DNA of 64,000 nucleotides, taken from positions 62,001-126,000 of the forward strand of contig NW_025964359.1 in assembly GCF_023055435.1 (NCBI RefSeq), read 5' to 3'. Both the position numbers and the translations under genes were made by a program. This document shows positions 51,993-60,869 of this stretch, one piece after another; the first letter of the stretch is position 1; every line of letters begins with the position of its first letter. This stretch comes from Haliotis rufescens (Eukaryota). The notes below the pieces were generated by a model. That model saw only the letters and a list, made by a program, of their open reading frames with translations, had not been told where the DNA came from and made no database searches.

Positions 51993-54900
51993 TTACAGTA
52001 ACTCGTGCTTTTCCACCACAGCTCCACATGAACACTGAACAGTTTCTTTATCCATCTGTATCTCTGTTTTCTTTAAGCAAACCAAGCATTGGTGTTTCGT
52101 TAGTTCCTGAACATTATAAGCTTCATTACCATGAAACGAGAACGCAAGGTAAAATTGAACACGTTGTCCAGCAAATCTAGTTCCAACCAAACCAGCTCTA
52201 ATTGGAATGAAAAATACCTTAACTGGCACGGAATTCTGTCCGAGGTCTAGGTCTATGTATCCAGACAACCGGTTGCTGTTGGGGTGAGCAATCGTTCCCT
52301 TGCAGACCAAAAGGCTGTGTGGAGTACTCTGTATGTTCCTTCCTTCAATCTGAGCAGATAAACGGCTTCGGGGTATTAGACGCTTAATGCCAGAGTTGTT
52401 CTTTCCAAGCCATTCCTGGGGATATCTTGGTTTTGAAACAGATTTGATGAATTTGTCCATATCGTCCTTTAGCATTTGGGCTTGAACGAGACTCTCACTA
52501 TTTCCTTTGCACTCTGCTGATCCAAAGCCAACAAGGCTCAACACGACAAAGAGGTAGAATGTTGATGTTGGGCTGTGAAGTGTTTCATACCAGTATCTGA
52601 TCTTGCTGAGAACATCTTGTTCTGAATACGTGCTGGGAAAGTGTGGGTGTCGTATGGCAACAAGCCATTCTTTAAAGTCTGACTCAAGCTGCCTCTTGCT
52701 GAAGTCCCCCATCACTGATGCGTCTTTGAAGTTCTCTTCATAGAGATTGATGAACTCAATTATATCTGCTTCTGGAATATTACTGATCTCAAACACACTG
52801 TGGTGACCTTTTCTGGTGTATTTGAGTTTGTTTGCAGCTATCAGCAGTCTCCTTGATGTCACTGACATATTGTCAAGTCTGTGAATGTCAAACATATTTC
52901 TTTCAAACAGCTGATCGTACCAAAGGACGGCTGAATGAAATGTTTGATCAAGATTTCCAGGGTCAATGAGACTGTAACATTCAAGAATCATATCTTCGAT
53001 ATCAGTAATGCTGTCCATGATAAACTCTGCTACTGGTTCGCCATGACGACCATGTTTGGTTAGGAAGCCTGATACTCCACCGTTAGTGTAGTTTCTGTTG
53101 ACAAAATCACATACTTGCAGGCGAACGCGGATTTCACTGGAATATCCATAACACTCTTCATAACCTGAAGGTGCATTTTGCCTGCAATGTGTAAAATAGC
53201 TACAAGCTGTATCTGCATCTCTCACGAGTTCTTCAATTCGAAGGTTAAATTCTCCTTCAGTTGTCTCAGTTTCTGGTTTGCTACCTTGGCTTCTTCCCGT
53301 GTACTTTCCAACACGACGTTGATATATGGTACCATACATGTGGTATATGTGCATCAATGTCAGCTTCCTCCATTCCTCTGTTACAGAGGTAAGTGGACCA
53401 TCGTTCCATTTCTTGCACAGATCAAGGGCATCTTCAAAACATCTCTCTGCCTTGTCCTCTTCTTCTTGTCGGCAGTGTGCATAGAAACGTCCAAGATGAG
53501 CAAGGAAATTTGGATCATCGGGAAAAGAAGATGATAGTCTCCTAAGAACTTCTAGTCTTCCTGTGAATGGTGAATTCATGTCAATGTCACATATCAGTTG
53601 TGAAAAAAGAGGTCTTTTCTTAATTTGAACTTCATTTTCTCCAACATCTTTGTTATCTCTGTAAATGAATGTCCTCGTAAGAATTTTGATTATATTGTGA
53701 GCTGTCAAAGATGACCTGGTCCTCCTTGAACTAAACATGGAAATAAACTCAAGGCAAAACTCCTTTAGATTGTGTTTAGCCTTCTTGCTTAGGGTTTGAA
53801 GCCTTGTGTCTTGTTTGGTGCTTGACCGATTCAAAACTTGTTCCAAAATTTCCTTTGCAAGGTAGTAATTGCTGATCCGTATGTTCTTTTCCCGACCATC
53901 GGATGCATCTTCAACAACAAACTCCATGATTGGGTATGGAAAGTCATCTATACATACATCAAAGTTTGACTGTTTTCCCAAAAGTCGAGCAAACACTTGA
54001 CATGGCATGGACGTCTGACCATAGAAATATACAAGTGACAGGTAACCGAGGATCTTCTGCCATGACAAAAGGTGCCTTGTGGGGTTTTCCTCCAACCGAA
54101 GATACCCTTTCACATATGTTTCTATTCCTCTGAACTCGTGATGATACACTGCCATACCGAATTCATACATCACATGATGCCTCTTTTTCTGTTGAACATC
54201 TTTGCACATTTTGGATAGTACCTTTTTCCTATTATCTTCTTGACATCTTTCAAGGAATTTGAAAGAAAGGATTTTGGCTTCGTCTTCTGTTACTTCTCCT
54301 CTTAACCAAAATTTGTTGTCTTTTGGACGTTGAAGTGGCTCTTTTATTGCATAAGGATAACGTTTTGCATAGATGACAATGATGCATCCTGATTTCAATT
54401 TCTTCATAATTTGCTTCACACGAGGTTCATCTTCCCCGTCAATCAAAAGAACAACTGGGAGGCCAGAAACATCGTACAGATATTGTATTTTTGCCAAAAC
54501 TTCCTCAATCAATATGCCAGGCCTCTGTTTAAGTTGACAACATGGACATATCTTTCTCAATTCCCACAATATTCGTTGCGCTAGTGTTGTTCCTCCAGCA
54601 CCGGGGGCATGAAATATTGTGACAGTAGCACTTCTAAATTCCTTAATGAGTTTCTGCTCTACATGTTCAATGATATATTTCATGATGTCTCTTTCAACAT
54701 CAACGTGTGTTGTTCCAAAGGCGTATCTGGCACACCAGTGAAGTGACCCCCCCTTGAAGAAACAATCCACTTCTTTTGTCAGTTCTTCAACATCAGCTTC
54801 CCCTTTAGTGTACGGACTGGACAAGTACAGAACCACTAAGTCCTCACGTAGCCAAGCTGCATCTTTGTCTGTTACATCAGCATGCATATGACTTTCTTGC

Positions 54901-56776
54901 TTTGGAAGAGAGTAATCCATTTCTCTTTGTTTCGAAATCTCTTTCAGCATGTTCCCCACAGATAAACAAAGACTTTCCAAATCAATCTTCAGCTGAACTA
55001 AGTTGGTATTGTAGTCAGATTCAAGAAGCTGTAAAACTGACTTTCCAACGCTTGAATTTAGTTCTTGTAATAAGCAAACAATAATCTTTGGTTGAACATG
55101 GAAGTGGTCATTTAACTTGCACAGGAATTTGTAGACGCACTGGGCTTGTATTTCATTATCTGGCCATAGTACAATTAATCTAAGCACTGTATAATCTTCT
55201 GAAAATCTTGCCAGGTTAAGACAAGTGCTGTTCAGATTTCCTTTGACAAGCTGCAACCATCCATTTGGGTTGTGTGAAGTTTGGGTGTCTGGTATTTCAC
55301 AAAGTCCACGAAGACATATCCATTGGGTGCCACTTTCTGTAATACCCTGTGGGGAATCTTTCCATGTCGACACATGTAGGTACCTTTTCCTCTTTATAAC
55401 ATCCTCCAAACATGAAAGCAAACCTGAGTGTCTACTAGACTCCTCAAAGTCGTACACAGCTAGCCATGACACGAGTGCCAAATTATCCACATGTCTTACT
55501 GATTCTGGTAAACTGCCTGTAATCAATACAAAATGTCCCTTTTTGAAGTAATCTACTGCAGAACAAAAATCAGCTGTTGTCACTCCTCTCTTGATTGTTG
55601 CTGAGTATTCTTCATCAGGATACTCAAAATCCCCTTTATCTATTACTTGTCTGGTTGTTTCTGTATTTTCCTCCACAGACATCTGACCAGTTCCACCAAA
55701 CCACTGATAAATCTGGCCTGTCAGAAAATCCTGTGGCAGACTGAGTCGATTATGTCTCCCAGACCTGACCCACAACTGACCTGCTGTAAGAGTCAGCTGG
55801 TTACTATCTGTGAAGTCTTTAGTAACAACTGAAGGCACGCCTTGGCCATAGCTGCTTTGAACATCAATAATACCAATTACTTTGTCTTGGTAAACTACTT
55901 CTTTGTACTTGAAATTAGGCATCATCGAAAAATGATCTTTGTTAAAATAAGCCTGATAAAAATCATCACTTGATCGAACCCGAACTCCTACCACAGAATG
56001 TGGTTTTGTCTGATTCAAGCACACTCCAATCACAACAGATGATGTGTGTCTTGAGGGGGTATTCCATAGAGATACTATATCCTGCATAAAGATTGCTTGT
56101 CCATCCATGTATATTGATTCATCTGGGTAAAACAGAAGTACATCACTTTCATCCTTCCTCAACAAATCTCGAACCATAAACCTCTCTGAATTGTATATTT
56201 CCTCTGTGCCAGAAGATGTTGACTCCTCTTTAGAAATAGATTGAGAAGTTTCTACACTGTGGACTTTCAGAACCGATTTTTTTTCACTGCGTTTTGATTT
56301 TTGTTGCTGCCATGGCTCCGAGTTCAAGTTTTCTTCATCATCGTCATTTTCTGTTGCATATCCAGAAGCTTCACCAAGTTTCTGAACCTCAACTTTCTCT
56401 TCTGTGCACTCATTTCTTGCTTCTTTTAATGGCAAGGTCGATTTCGGATCTGAATGAACACTTGCTGTACATGTCACACTTTTTCTTACTTCCTTTGAGT
56501 CCTCAGATTTCTTCCTGTCTCTCCATTTCAACCTGATTGTTTGTTTTCCTTTTGTAGAGTACATGTCATAATATTCACTATTAGTTTCAATAAACTTTCG
56601 AAGAGGTGCTCCATATGCATCTTTAAATGACTTGACAGTGGAACAATGTCTTCTATATTGCTTTGTGAAACGCTCTTCAACAATTTTCATAGACATCTCT
56701 ATCGCTTTTTCGGAACATGTTGGGTTTATTATGCTATTTACCATACCAACAAACACGTCATTCTTGCTTATTCCTC
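51993..56776 (-). CDS. SAMD9/SAMD9L-like STAND NTPase, main exon (AlbA/Schlafen-like, SIR2-like, P-loop, TPR, OB fold, C-terminal Cys motif)
   Basis: IFHAPGAGGTTLAQRILWELR (SAMD9-type Walker A), PVVLLIDGED (Walker B), WLAVYDFE..S..SGL, NFLAHLGRFY and RVQFYLAFSFHG.EAYNV; acceptor TTTTCAG| at 56777. Confidence 0.9.
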
Positions 56777-57217: not shown

Positions 57218-57334
57218 CTTGTGTATCGTCCAGTAACGATTTTCCTTCTTTGAAAACTACATTTCCACTTCCGACTTGGACAATACCAGGGTTCTTCAAC
57301 GTGATGTAGTTATTGATAGTTTCACCTCTTTGCT
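57218..57334 (-). CDS. SAMD9-like gene, exon 2 (39 codons) encoding a RHIM-like motif
   Basis: TTACAG|...CAAG|GTAAGA, phase 1-1; translates QRGETINNYITLKNPGIVQVGSGNVVFKEGKSLLDDTQG in frame with the main exon. Confidence 0.8.
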
Positions 57335-57509
57335 CTGTAATACACAACACAAAGAGAAAACTACTTGAAGAAACGTTTACAAGCTTTGCAAGTATTTAGA
57401 TCAGTAAAATAATTTATGTGGAATACTTGTCACTTCATGATCATTTCTATAAAACACATATATCAGACAGCGACAGGACAATATATATTTTCTAGTGTTT
57501 GTTGAAATA

Positions 57510-59017
57510 TACTGAACCGCAAAAGAAACGTCACCCCAAGTAACATTGCCTGAAAAGTTGTCATTTAAATATCTGGGTAATCTTTGTCAAAGTTTCCAAA
57601 ATTTAACATTCCCTTGTCTGGAACGTGAAATTTGATGATAAAAAAACAAAGTAGATGACAATAAAACCGATCACCCAAAGGCATCACGGCAATGGACATG
57701 GTAACCCGATGTACGTGAGTTCCGTGCAAATTTAAATGAACATGCGATCCCCCTTTTCTTACCCTATAAAAATCCACCCAGATCGGATAACATTCATTTG
57801 TTATTGAATTGCTACCACATGCCCGGATTGACAAGAAATCAGCGACACCAAGCCCTTGGACGATTGCAAGCTGGACATACCGCCCGGCAAGTAGCCAATG
57901 GATTTCTAATCCACGTAAGGACATTATACAGGCTCCAGCAACGGTGCCAGACCACCAACACTACAGATGACCGACCACGTAGTGGTAGACCAAGGGTCAC
58001 CACCCAACGTCAGGACCGTCAGATTGTGCGACAGCATCCTCAAGATCGCTTTGTTACTGCTGTGGAAACTGCTCGACAAACCATGGGGACACACCAGCGA
58101 CACATTAGTGCAGACATCGTGCGTCGACAATTGACGAGCAGACACCTCCACTGTCACAGGCCACAACGAGGACCAATTCTGACACCACATCATCGCCGGG
58201 ACCGTCTTCAGTGGGCACTGGCGCCACCAGCAGTGGAGAAGAGTCCTCTTCTCAGACGAGAGCCGTTACTGTATCTCAACAGCAGATGGCAGAGAGAGTG
58301 TCTGGCGACGCCGCGGGGAACGTTATTCGGATGCTTGTGTTGTTGAGAGAGACTCGTGGGGTGGTCCGAGCATCATGGTGTGGTGTGGAATTGGTCTTGC
58401 ACAGAGGGGCGGCCCTGTGGTCTTCCAGAACATCGGTCTAGGGAGAGGCAATGGTGTCACAGCAGCTCGGTACATGATTAAGCCTTGAGACCACACACCA
58501 TACCTCATTTGGCACTTTCAGCATGATAACGCCAGTGCCCACACTGCGAGAGCAACAAGAGACTTCCTCCAGCAGAATGGCATCAGAACCATGCAGTGGC
58601 CTGGCCTCAGTCCCGATTTAAATCCCATTGAGCACCTGTGGGACGAGATTCAGAGACGGCTGAATGACGTCCGACCAAGGTCGACAACTGCAGCTGAACT
58701 GCGTCAGGCGTTCCTCAGAGTGTGGGCTCAAATGCCTATGGCCACCATCAACCGCCTCATCCATTCCATGTATCGACGTTGCACGGCAGTCATCAATGCA
58801 CATGGCGGACACAAGAGATACTGACTTGTGATGCCATTTCCTCAGAGACTAGTGTTGTGTTTCACTTTAAGAACATATGACACTTTAATTTCAACCTTGA
58901 TGATCAGTTTTGTCAAGTTTCATCTTTTTAATATGTCTCAAAGTATGTTTACAGTGTTTGGACAAATAAGGTTTCTCATATATCTATCCATGGTGACGTT
59001 TCTTTTGCAGTTCAGTA
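57510..59017 (+). mobile_element. Full-length Tc1-like transposon in intron, transposase frameshifted
   Basis: ~26-bp TIRs TACTGAACCGCAAAAGAAACGTCACC / GGTGACGTTTCTTTTGCAGTTCAGTA with TA flanks; GRPRVTT, FSDESR, QHDNA and SPDLNPIEHLW. Confidence 0.92.
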
Positions 59018-60232
59018 TACATATTGCATACCTGCACTGTTGTCTGCTGGGTAGACAGTTCATGTTCACATGAAAAGTTTATTCTGACAGCTTATGTTTA
59101 GCCCCCTTTTAATATTGAATGATTTCGCGTGCTACCTTTCTTGAATTGGTTTACAAATGTCTTCAAAATGTATTTAGTCTCAATATATTTGTATAGGCCA
59201 AATCGTTTCGTCGACAAACAAAACTGATATTGATTGTATTAAAATCTGTTAGATGAAACAAACGTGTTAATATGTTAACAAATGAGTGGACAACCAGAAA
59301 AGTGTTTACACTCATTTTGCATGTCAGTCCATCTCTACTTTTCATGAATGCCTTAAACGTTCAATGATTCCCTAAACAGATCCCACCAGAAACGTATGCT
59401 ATTTGTACAGCTGACCTCAGCAGCATTCATATTCAAATATGATCCCTTTGGTTCACACTCAATGCATTAGATGTGAAATTCAGCAAATCAAATACGTAAG
59501 TTTTCAGGAAACACTTGTATGTAATAATACAATTTGAAACAAAAACGTCAAATGCCTCTAATTACCAAAATAACGGTGTAATATGCACATCCAGTCCGGT
59601 GAGTAACTTTAAAACAGACAGGCCCATGACTCAGAACACAATCATGGGTGACAAAGTCTCTATAAACTGTCAGTTAATCATTGAAAATCGTTCTTATCAA
59701 TGTATGAATGACCTTGATATTCGAGATGACATTGACATTGTGAGACTGTTTTCAAAGAATATCAAGCATAGAAAAATGTTTAGTTTGCTCATGAATTAAA
59801 ACCAAGTTTTTTTTCTGAATTTTGAATGTATTGGAATTTTTCATCTCTAATGACCTTGACCTCTGAATGTCATACAAATTCCAAATCTATTTCTGTTTCA
59901 CACCCTCATCTCTGGTAATATTGACCTTATACAGAGGTCACGCAAAATCAACTCAGACCCCACTCTAAAGATCAGTGTGCATTAAGTGGCACTATACCAA
60001 ATGTAAGAAAAGATCCCCAACAGGGATACTATACAGGTGGGATGAAAAAATTTGCTGTAAATTCTTGATACAGAGAAACAAAACTGCAGACGCTGCTTTG
60101 TTAGGTCCAATACATCTTGATTTGTGGATAAAACCATATTTCAAAAAAGTCCTCAAAATACTTTGATACTGGATGGTTACCATCAAGATTACTTTATGGA
60201 GAAGATCTTCGCTTGTATTATAGTGCACGTAC

Positions 60233-60293
60233 CTATTTTTGTATCACTTTCTTTTTGACGTGGAGATTTTTTCTTCGTACGACTCTCGGCCAT
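60233..60293 (-). CDS. Probable first coding exon of the SAMD9-like gene (MAESRTKKKSPRQKESDTKI)
   Basis: AAC-ATG-G start and phase-1 donor ATAG|GTACGT; joining the three exons gives 4962 nt (1653 aa). Confidence 0.6.
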
Positions 60294-60869
60294 GTTCGTT
60301 TTATCTGGAATAAAAAGCAGAGGCTAGTTTGAGCTGAAGTGCTAGCTAGTAAATGCATTATTATACCCCGTCCGTGCAAGATGTCGTTTCCAGAGCAGAT
60401 CTATTTTATTGGATACACGTTTATTATCGAGTATTAGTAACCAGGGGCGGACCCCCTGAATCCCGCCTATGATTCCACCACCGACAATTATTTCAGTCAT
60501 TTTATGGCTCAATCTGGGATAGGTTATTGTTTGACCAAAAATCGTTTTAAGTTAGATGAGGAGCACATTTTAAGAGAAATTATTTTTAGTGTGATATTGT
60601 CAGTTTAAGTTCATTTATTTGTTGTTAAATAACTATATTTCATTCTTCGTTTGTCGTTCTGTAATATATGACATTCCATGGTATAATGATGGATGGTTTT
60701 CTTTTCAAAAGAAGGGCATGTAACAAGCTAATGCCTGCCTCTAAACTCCCTCTATTGATCAATGAAGTACATATTATTATAACTGTTTACACGGCAGTAT
60801 TAACTGAACCAACCAGCACTAGACAGTACAATTTTAATACATAACATTCATTGGTATAGAAAAGAAATT

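Follow-up and report, generated by a model that had tools for sequence, protein, structure and literature searches.

A diverged RHIM-like motif on a separate N-terminal exon of a SAMD9-family protein of the abalone Haliotis rufescens

Results

The gene LOC124146127 of Haliotis rufescens, which lies on the minus strand of the window (the whole 64-kb stretch of DNA analyzed here), probably encodes a SAMD9-family STAND NTPase that carries an ancestral N-terminal RHIM as an output or assembly module. Comparisons of the protein with its relatives argue that the motif descends from a RHIM, of which it is a diverged copy. An earlier note on this DNA, made from the letters alone, had proposed a RHIM-like motif on a symmetric phase-1 exon, 57218-57334, lying in frame with a SAMD9-like exon, and the sequence and the NCBI model agree with it on the exon, its phases and its frame. 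The parts of the gene on which the argument depends are as follows.

Exon 1, coding part: 60233-60293, minus strand; ATG at 60293-60291, encoding MAESRTKKKSPRQKESDTKI plus one base (phase 1).
Intron 1: 57335-60232, minus strand; contains the remnant of a high-copy Tc1/mariner-like transposon at about 57500-59030.
Exon 2: 57218-57334, minus strand; 117 nt, phase 1/1, encoding QRGETINNYITLKNPGIVQVGSGNVVFKEGKSLLDDTQ (38 amino acids).
Diverged RHIM: 57252-57317, minus strand; INNYITLKNPGIVQVGSGNVVF, from the alignment of 11 mollusc N-termini.
Exon 3: 51993-56776, minus strand; a 4.8-kb open reading frame of 1593 codons plus stop, encoding the SAMD9-like body.

The coding part of exon 1 is 61 nt long, with its donor after 60233, and its product is a basic, low-complexity leader that is also the N-terminus of the NCBI model. 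Exon 2, whose peptide includes NYITLKNPGIVQVGSGNVVF, is bounded by an acceptor at 57334 (ttacag/AGCAAAG; ttgtgtattacag/AG) and a donor at 57218 (ACACAAG/gtaaga), and both the AG and the GT sites were rated good. Two bases complete a codon at the start of the exon and one base begins a codon at its end, which gives phase 1 on both sides, and the joins of exon 1 to exon 2 and of exon 2 to exon 3 are both in frame. The NCBI model of LOC124146127 (1653 amino acids, beginning MAESRTKKKSPRQKESDTKIEQRGETINNYITLKNPGIVQVGSGNVVFKEGKSLLDDTQGGISKND) is exactly this three-exon join; in our searches the exons, rather than the joined model, served as separate queries.

Splicing was deduced from depth arithmetic, contig geometry and the NCBI model; noise from the transposon in intron 1 hid the joint rows. 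Three RNA-like runs (X1, X5 and X6, from three studies and with three organism labels) were set beside a DNA run (X15), which was flat at 26x. In all three RNA-like runs exon 3 was covered up to 56775, the interval 57340-57493 had zero depth, and exon 1 showed partial depth, amounting to 33 nt in the bin 60112-60265 and about 45 nt in the bin 60266-60400, which fits an exon extending from 60233 to about 60310. Zero depth was also found over 59034-60111 in X1 and X5, and X6 showed a trace at 59496-59803. The depth of the bin containing exon 2 corresponded to 117-118 nt at the depth of the exon-3 contig (14.8 against 19.3 in X1; 5.99 against 7.82 in X5). An X1 contig of 5503 nt reaches 337 nt 5' of 56775, and the sole X1 contig at 57294 and 57297 has the same depth as exon 3 (19.3), its aligned piece stopping 41 letters on, at 57334. 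Exon 2 is real and spliced to the main exon, as the earlier note had supposed, and is kept in transcripts at full depth.

Two other features of this region were observed. The transposon remnant, which includes an open reading frame on the plus strand at 57798-58346, reached a summed contig depth of 2e5 to 5e5 over 57494-59033 in the DNA run X15, compared with 26x for unique sequence, and fragments of it were also present in the RNA-like runs. At 57294 and 57297, X1 and X15 read AAT (Asn) instead of AAG (Lys) at the K of LKNPG, a residue that H. asinina shares with these two runs, and X1 also has a silent Leu change nearby; these changes are polymorphisms or species differences located just upstream of the RHIM core.

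The assignment of the protein encoded by exon 3 to the SAMD9 family is secure from sequence comparison, in keeping with the earlier description of a SAMD9-like protein downstream of the motif. A phmmer search of PDB with exon 3 had human SAMD9 as its sole match, at the P-loop with E 7e-11, and a profile of 17 relatives matched SAMD9 chains only (E 7e-34). Positions 194-821 of the family profile are colinear with positions 71-737 of the SAMD9 chain, in the order AlbA_2, SIR2-like, P-loop. Three domains of exon 3 are referred to below.

LOTUS-like winged helix: 56529-56765, minus strand; residues ~4-82 of exon 3, from the AF2 model.
AlbA_2-type domain: 55746-56099, minus strand; residues 226-343, homologous to the SAMD9 tRNase module.
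STAND P-loop NTPase: 54270-54779, minus strand; residues 666-835.

The first 85 residues of exon 3 were predicted by AF2, at a pLDDT of 85, to form a winged helix with the secondary structure H-H-H-H-E-E. The best Foldseek matches of this model were the LOTUS domains of TDRD7, MARF1, Oskar, TDRD5 and Tejas, at probabilities up to 0.99 and with weak E-values (0.07-0.7), and the domain had no Pfam match. It occupies the place that the SAM domain has in vertebrate SAMD9, and Pfam detected no SAM domain in the window's protein, the absence of which had already been remarked on from the sequence. The winged helix is found in only two genes of the genome, and both carry the RHIM exon. The AlbA_2-type region scored below the cut-off with Pfam SLFN_AlbA_2 (E 0.018) and falls within the profile alignment to SAMD9; the active-site acids of the human SAMD9 tRNase are E184, E196, E218 and D241 (PMC10246899). 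The Walker A motif is HAPGAGGTT, with GAGGTT at 54585-54602, and is aligned with HHPGCGGTT of SAMD9 within the P-loop stretch HAPGAGGTTLAQRILWELRK; residues G725, G727, G728, T729 and T730 are invariant among the 17 relatives. Toward the C-terminus, the TPR region gave only a short, weak match to TPR_12 (E 0.069), and about 20-35 residues of the OB tail could be aligned, with bit scores that were negative or near zero. A C-terminal cysteine cluster (CxxC...CxC; 51996-52088, residues 1563-1583 of exon 3) is near-invariant in the family; it is matched weakly by DUF7695 in the window's protein and by Zn_ribbon_RPAB4 in the relative P0009, and we know of no description of such a cluster for vertebrate SAMD9.

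The core of the exon 2 motif, VQVG, was confirmed on the minus strand at 57281-57270 and has the form of the RHIM core tetrad, (I/V)-Q-(I/V)-G. Counted from the Gln residue, the flanking positions of the motif are I(-9), L(-7), N(-5), N(+5), V(+6) and V(+7), and these columns recur in the mollusc relatives and in the aligned RIPK3 chains. The Gln and Gly residues of the tetrad are invariant in the alignment of 11 mollusc N-termini. In the abalone motif Pro replaces Cys at -4, and Gly is located at -3 instead of -2; these two differences could impair the formation of fibrils.

Taken alone, the motif of exon 2 scores as a weak RHIM. The Pfam RHIM model (PF12721, cut-off 20 bits), which had been suggested as a check, gave no match on exon 2 at E-values up to 10. 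Custom RHIM profiles built without Haliotis sequences scored exon 2 at 6.2-10.1 bits, a score reached by 19-142 of 20,000 composition-preserving shuffles (p ~0.001-0.007), and a profile of seven unrelated abalone RHIMs gave it 7.3 bits. When Haliotis-free profiles were run untargeted over all six frames of the window, exon 2 was indistinguishable from noise. The tetrad [IVL]Q[IVLH]G occurs elsewhere in these proteins and is by itself unremarkable; what goes beyond chance, as judged from the alignments, is the extended motif at a homologous N-terminal position across the family. The identification as a RHIM rests on this positional homology and on a chain of intermediate sequences.

The first link in the chain is the sole abalone paralogue of the subfamily, which is located at C35:6.865 Mb and is 41% identical. 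Some 600 nt 5' of its large exon it has a 123-nt exon, again in phase 1/1, and the encoded peptide YLNDCSGVQIGNQNQ (PKYTNVQNYYLNDCSGVQIGNQNQQF...) passes the Pfam RHIM model with 20.2 bits against a cut-off of 20. BLASTP of exon 2 against this exon gave no alignment, the peptides being short and diverged. Pfam RHIM matches were obtained at the same N-terminal position in Sinanodonta (18.2 bits; motif NCQGLQLGNYN), Solemya (18.1 bits; ININNCTGIQIGDHN) and Mercenaria (12.9 bits; INIKNCHTVQIGQTN), and the motif occupies this place in two further relatives known as transcripts. The H. asinina motif is IVQVGSGN, and the stretch IVQVGSGNV is identical to that of H. rufescens; between the two Haliotis species exon 2 is 82% identical, compared with 83% for the main exon. 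The Gigantopelta orthologue, which is 47% identical overall, has the motif NVGVVQIGGNN and no Pfam RHIM match. When exon 2 was compared by BLASTP with the whole 1705-residue Gigantopelta protein, the best match was its N-terminal motif (E 0.002). Among these mollusc relatives the motif was found at the same N-terminal place in gastropods and bivalves.

A profile of the 11 mollusc N-termini (A1) was then run against 177,635 PDB sequences. RIPK3 fibril-core chains were matches 1-4 (E 3.6e-4 to 1.1e-3), RIPK1 accounted for matches 5-9, and a viral M45-type RHIM was match 10. The earlier description of the motif as RHIM-like therefore stands by homology, through the paralogue at 20.2 bits and the profile that leads to RIPK3, RIPK1 and M45, with the reservation that the abalone exon holds a diverged copy. 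Two forms of the motif can be distinguished, N-x-G-[IV]-VQ[IV]G-x-x-N in Haliotis and Gigantopelta and N-C-x-[GT]-[IV]QIG-x-x-N in the bivalves and the paralogue; the former has Pro or Val in place of Cys at -4, and its Gly has moved by one place. In a quick tree, RHIM-bearing members fell in a gastropod clade, in a bivalve clade and in the deep-branching paralogue, which argues that the ancestor of the mollusc subfamily already had the motif. Two relatives carry another domain in the N-terminal slot, with no clear RHIM: P0024, from Babylonia areolata, has a CARD (PF00619), after which there is a possibly degenerate stretch YNMEYVNKVVFVNQVVPG, and P0032, known as a transcript, has HEPN_DZIP3 (PF18738).

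The symmetric phase 1/1 of exon 2 fits the exon shuffling that had been suggested as its origin. A tblastn-type search of the genome with the 38 residues of exon 2 found no close copies elsewhere, and this self-only match gives no support for recent shuffling. A survey of splice phases in the other abalone RHIM exons uncovered no common phase-1/1 module; the phase-1/1 RHIM exon is common to only the two SAMD9-like paralogues. Given that the motif appears ancestral to the mollusc subfamily, any acquisition would be old and not visible here.

Four SAMD9 paralogues of more distant kinship are present elsewhere in the abalone genome (on C583, C22 and C179), each consisting of one long open reading frame with a SAM-like start, and no RHIM was found upstream of these four SAM-type genes. 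Their positions within the extracted loci are listed here.

Distant paralogue L014: 6975-9998.
Distant paralogue L015: 6756-9998.
Distant paralogue L016: 7417-9999; passes Pfam SAM_2 N-terminally at 23.1 bits.
Distant paralogue L017: 2267-7141.

Mekhedov et al. (2017; PMC5445408) state that within this family SAM is restricted to vertebrates. A 4-kb tandem repeat (L013, 555-4574) was noted just upstream of the C35 paralogue; it contains several open frames, in one of which TTTATACI is repeated.

Canonical RHIMs, with Pfam scores of 23.7-27.8 bits, are encoded in other parts of the abalone genome, and two RHIM loci have a Death domain detected by Pfam (36.3 and 38.7 bits) downstream of the motif and on its strand. 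At the first (L002/L018, C35:4326499-4328613, minus strand), a split Death domain (36.3 bits) lies about 1.4-2 kb downstream of the RHIM PLINIVNSQNVQIGNYNRMY (27.8 bits), and a near-copy of this RHIM locus (L004) is located about 39 kb away. An assignment of the C35 locus to RIPK1 was considered and set aside, no kinase being evident upstream among the open reading frames; from its sequence the locus looks like an IMD-like or RIPK1-tail-like adaptor. The second (L007, L008, L012 and L025, C101:13.596-13.662 Mb) has three tandem exon copies encoding QDCSGIQIGDGN (17-19 bits), with the Death domain (38.7 bits) about 7 kb downstream of one of them. These RHIM-Death loci, which are predicted gene models, are candidate partners of the SAMD9-like RHIM. 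The tblastn-type search of the genome, in which the 38-residue exon matched only itself, yielded no partner that carries this diverged variant, and the six-frame scan revealed no second RHIM-like match in the 64-kb window. With no second motif in the window and the RHIM-Death loci on other contigs, an adjacent partner in the style of NWD2/HET-S was dropped from consideration. Two further RHIM loci were seen. At L003/L020 (C35:19.241-19.2455 Mb), an open reading frame with a transmembrane-like hydrophobic stretch, GIVAAVVAVLVVLAISWVVYKVV, precedes the RHIM CSGVQIGPNNSMTN (25.5 bits) by about 3.5 kb, and the locus may encode a membrane receptor with a cytoplasmic RHIM. At L010/L027 (C594:939.1-939.4 kb), an open reading frame beginning MAESPSS contains two adjacent RHIM-like stretches, FQNCEEIQVGDNN, followed by FNNCIININNYYNQ.

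Discussion

The protein described here would consist, from its N-terminus, of a basic leader, the RHIM, a short linker, the LOTUS-like winged helix, a charged spacer, an AlbA_2 domain of the tRNase type, a SIR2-like domain, the P-loop NTPase, a helical/TPR region and a C-terminal OB domain with a Cys4 cluster. In the SAMD9 family the N-terminus is a variable slot for homotypic interaction modules, occupied by SAM in vertebrates and elsewhere by CARD, Death, Pyrin or FIIND; members without SAM have been listed previously, and an apoptosome-like hub was predicted from the Death-fold variants (Mekhedov et al. 2017; PMC5445408). We propose that the RHIM fills this slot. NTP-dependent oligomerization of the STAND core, triggered by a ligand or by stress, would gather the N-terminal RHIMs, which, once clustered, would nucleate a RHIM assembly of cross-beta structure. 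Such an assembly could stabilize the oligomer, or it could recruit and template RHIM-bearing adaptors of the RHIM-Death kind, and the sensor would thereby be coupled to Death-fold signaling beside any direct tRNase action. We infer this mechanism from the behavior of the RHIMs of RIPK1/RIPK3, ZBP1 and M45, from the analogy with NWD2/HET-S, and from the logic of the slot. Fibril formation, partners and outcome are predictions on the same footing, and the antiviral role that the earlier note had given to the protein is suggested by vertebrate SAMD9. In its strongest form the proposal would define an ancient receptor class, kept in molluscs, in which an oligomerized SAMD9-type STAND NTPase, through its N-terminal RHIM, templates RHIM-Death adaptors into an amyloid signalosome; we advance this form tentatively and regard it as open to considerable doubt.

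It is conceivable that a short Gly/Asn/Val-rich peptide simply happens to contain VQVG, since the tetrad is common and the exon alone scores weakly. We consider this most improbable, because the same motif is present at the same N-terminal position in gastropod and bivalve relatives and in an exon of the same phase in the paralogue, the top ten PDB matches of the family profile are all RHIMs, and few shuffled peptides attain the score of exon 2. A motif that is a RHIM by descent might nevertheless have drifted in Haliotis and now serve as a flexible N-terminal linker that has no assembly function. The lack of a Pfam match on the exon and on the Gigantopelta orthologue, the score of 6-10 bits, the noise-level result of the untargeted scan, and an identity between Haliotis species that is no higher for the exon than for the rest of the protein are what a relic would be expected to show. 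All of the motif-defining positions are kept, however, with IVQVGSGNV identical in H. asinina, and Gigantopelta keeps N-x-G-V-VQIG-x-N-N despite its overall divergence. The Pro-Gly of the abalone motif aligns with C-S/T-G of the bivalves and the RIPK3 chains and need not break the motif, and the exon is retained in transcripts at undiminished depth. A relic is, in our judgment, unlikely.

The RHIM may be functional and yet have a narrower role, in which it replaces a polymerizing SAM domain and templates no downstream partner. The slot is indeed occupied by SAM in the other paralogues and in vertebrates, and we found neither a partner with the same diverged variant nor an adjacent effector gene with the motif. 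In other invertebrate SAMD9 proteins, however, the slot holds CARD, Death or Pyrin domains, which are partner-recruiting adaptors, and several RHIM loci with Death domains alongside are present in the abalone genome. Furthermore, known RHIMs make hetero-assemblies, as is established for those of RIPK1/RIPK3, ZBP1 and M45. That the protein merely assembles with itself therefore seems to us quite unlikely, and an ancestral RHIM that acts as an output or assembly module of a SAMD9-family STAND NTPase is the reading that we favor.

The combination of a RHIM with a SAMD9-type protein, which from the sequences is common to gastropods and bivalves, appears to be new. The literature search found no RHIM-SAMD9 architecture, full-text co-mentions of RHIM and SAMD9 being incidental, and the RHIM is absent from both Mekhedov et al. 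(2017; PMC5445408) and a 2025 cross-kingdom survey of SAMD9. To this extent the claim that no such architecture had been described holds; it does not extend to animal STAND proteins as a whole, for which there is a precedent in amphioxus. In immunity proteins of invertebrates, RHIMs have been reported in the place of adaptors, among others in the amphioxus RHIM-NACHT-repeat protein BF82280, for which an amyloid relay like that of fungal NWD2/HET-s was proposed (Kajava, Klopffleisch, Chen and Hofmann 2014; PMC4262963). Like the abalone protein, the amphioxus protein has a short RHIM in the unstructured N-terminus of a STAND NTPase, at the usual position of a CARD-like adaptor. Unlike it, the abalone protein has an NTPase of the SAMD9 type (AlbA_2, SIR2-like, P-loop, TPR and OB), a LOTUS-like winged helix between the RHIM and the core, a diverged RHIM, and a mollusc host.

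With SAMD9 and SAMD9L (PMC5445408; cryo-EM structures 9zjr and 37id) the abalone protein shares a colinear core, a GxGGTT Walker A motif and a variable N-terminal homotypic module, but that module is a RHIM with a LOTUS-like winged helix and not SAM, CARD, Death, Pyrin or FIIND. ZBP1/DAI is likewise a single innate sensor with both winged-helix nucleic-acid-binding domains and RHIMs, and it recruits partners that bear RHIMs; its Z-alpha domains, however, are N-terminal with the RHIMs after them, it has no NTPase, and its sequence is unrelated outside the RHIM. The amyloid motifs of fungal and bacterial NLR proteins (NWD2/HET-S, PP, sigma and BASS) resemble that of the abalone in being N-terminal, some 20 residues long and part of a STAND receptor, with templating by oligomerization expected, but their matching effector adjoins the receptor gene, whereas none was found in the abalone 64-kb window. 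In Drosophila, IMD and the cRHIMs of PGRP-LC/LE provide another case of an invertebrate RHIM-type motif tied to a Death-domain adaptor, and the abalone RHIM and Death loci resemble IMD or the C-terminus of RIPK1; unlike the motif studied here, these "cryptic" RHIMs are on peptidoglycan receptors, without a STAND NTPase.

The presence of a RHIM in the slot bears on how SAMD9-family proteins pass on their signal and on what the N-terminal module does. It would be a third kind of homotypic module in this position, and one with a known mechanism, the cross-beta templating of the RIPK1-RIPK3 necrosome, so that the idea of a hub becomes directly testable. It also adds to the few animal STAND receptors with amyloid-type motifs, hitherto the amphioxus NACHT proteins, and the mollusc RHIM repertoire, including the RHIM and Death loci, is relevant to how necroptosis-type and IMD-type signaling arose. 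Abalone are affected by herpesvirus and by withering disease, which gives an expressed sensor of antiviral type an applied interest. If the amyloid signalosome were borne out, animals would have an equivalent of the fungal NWD2/HET-S relay, and the SAMD9 antiviral system would for the first time be tied directly to RHIM or necroptosis-type signaling; the SAM domain of vertebrates would then have taken the place of an older output of the amyloid or Death-fold type.
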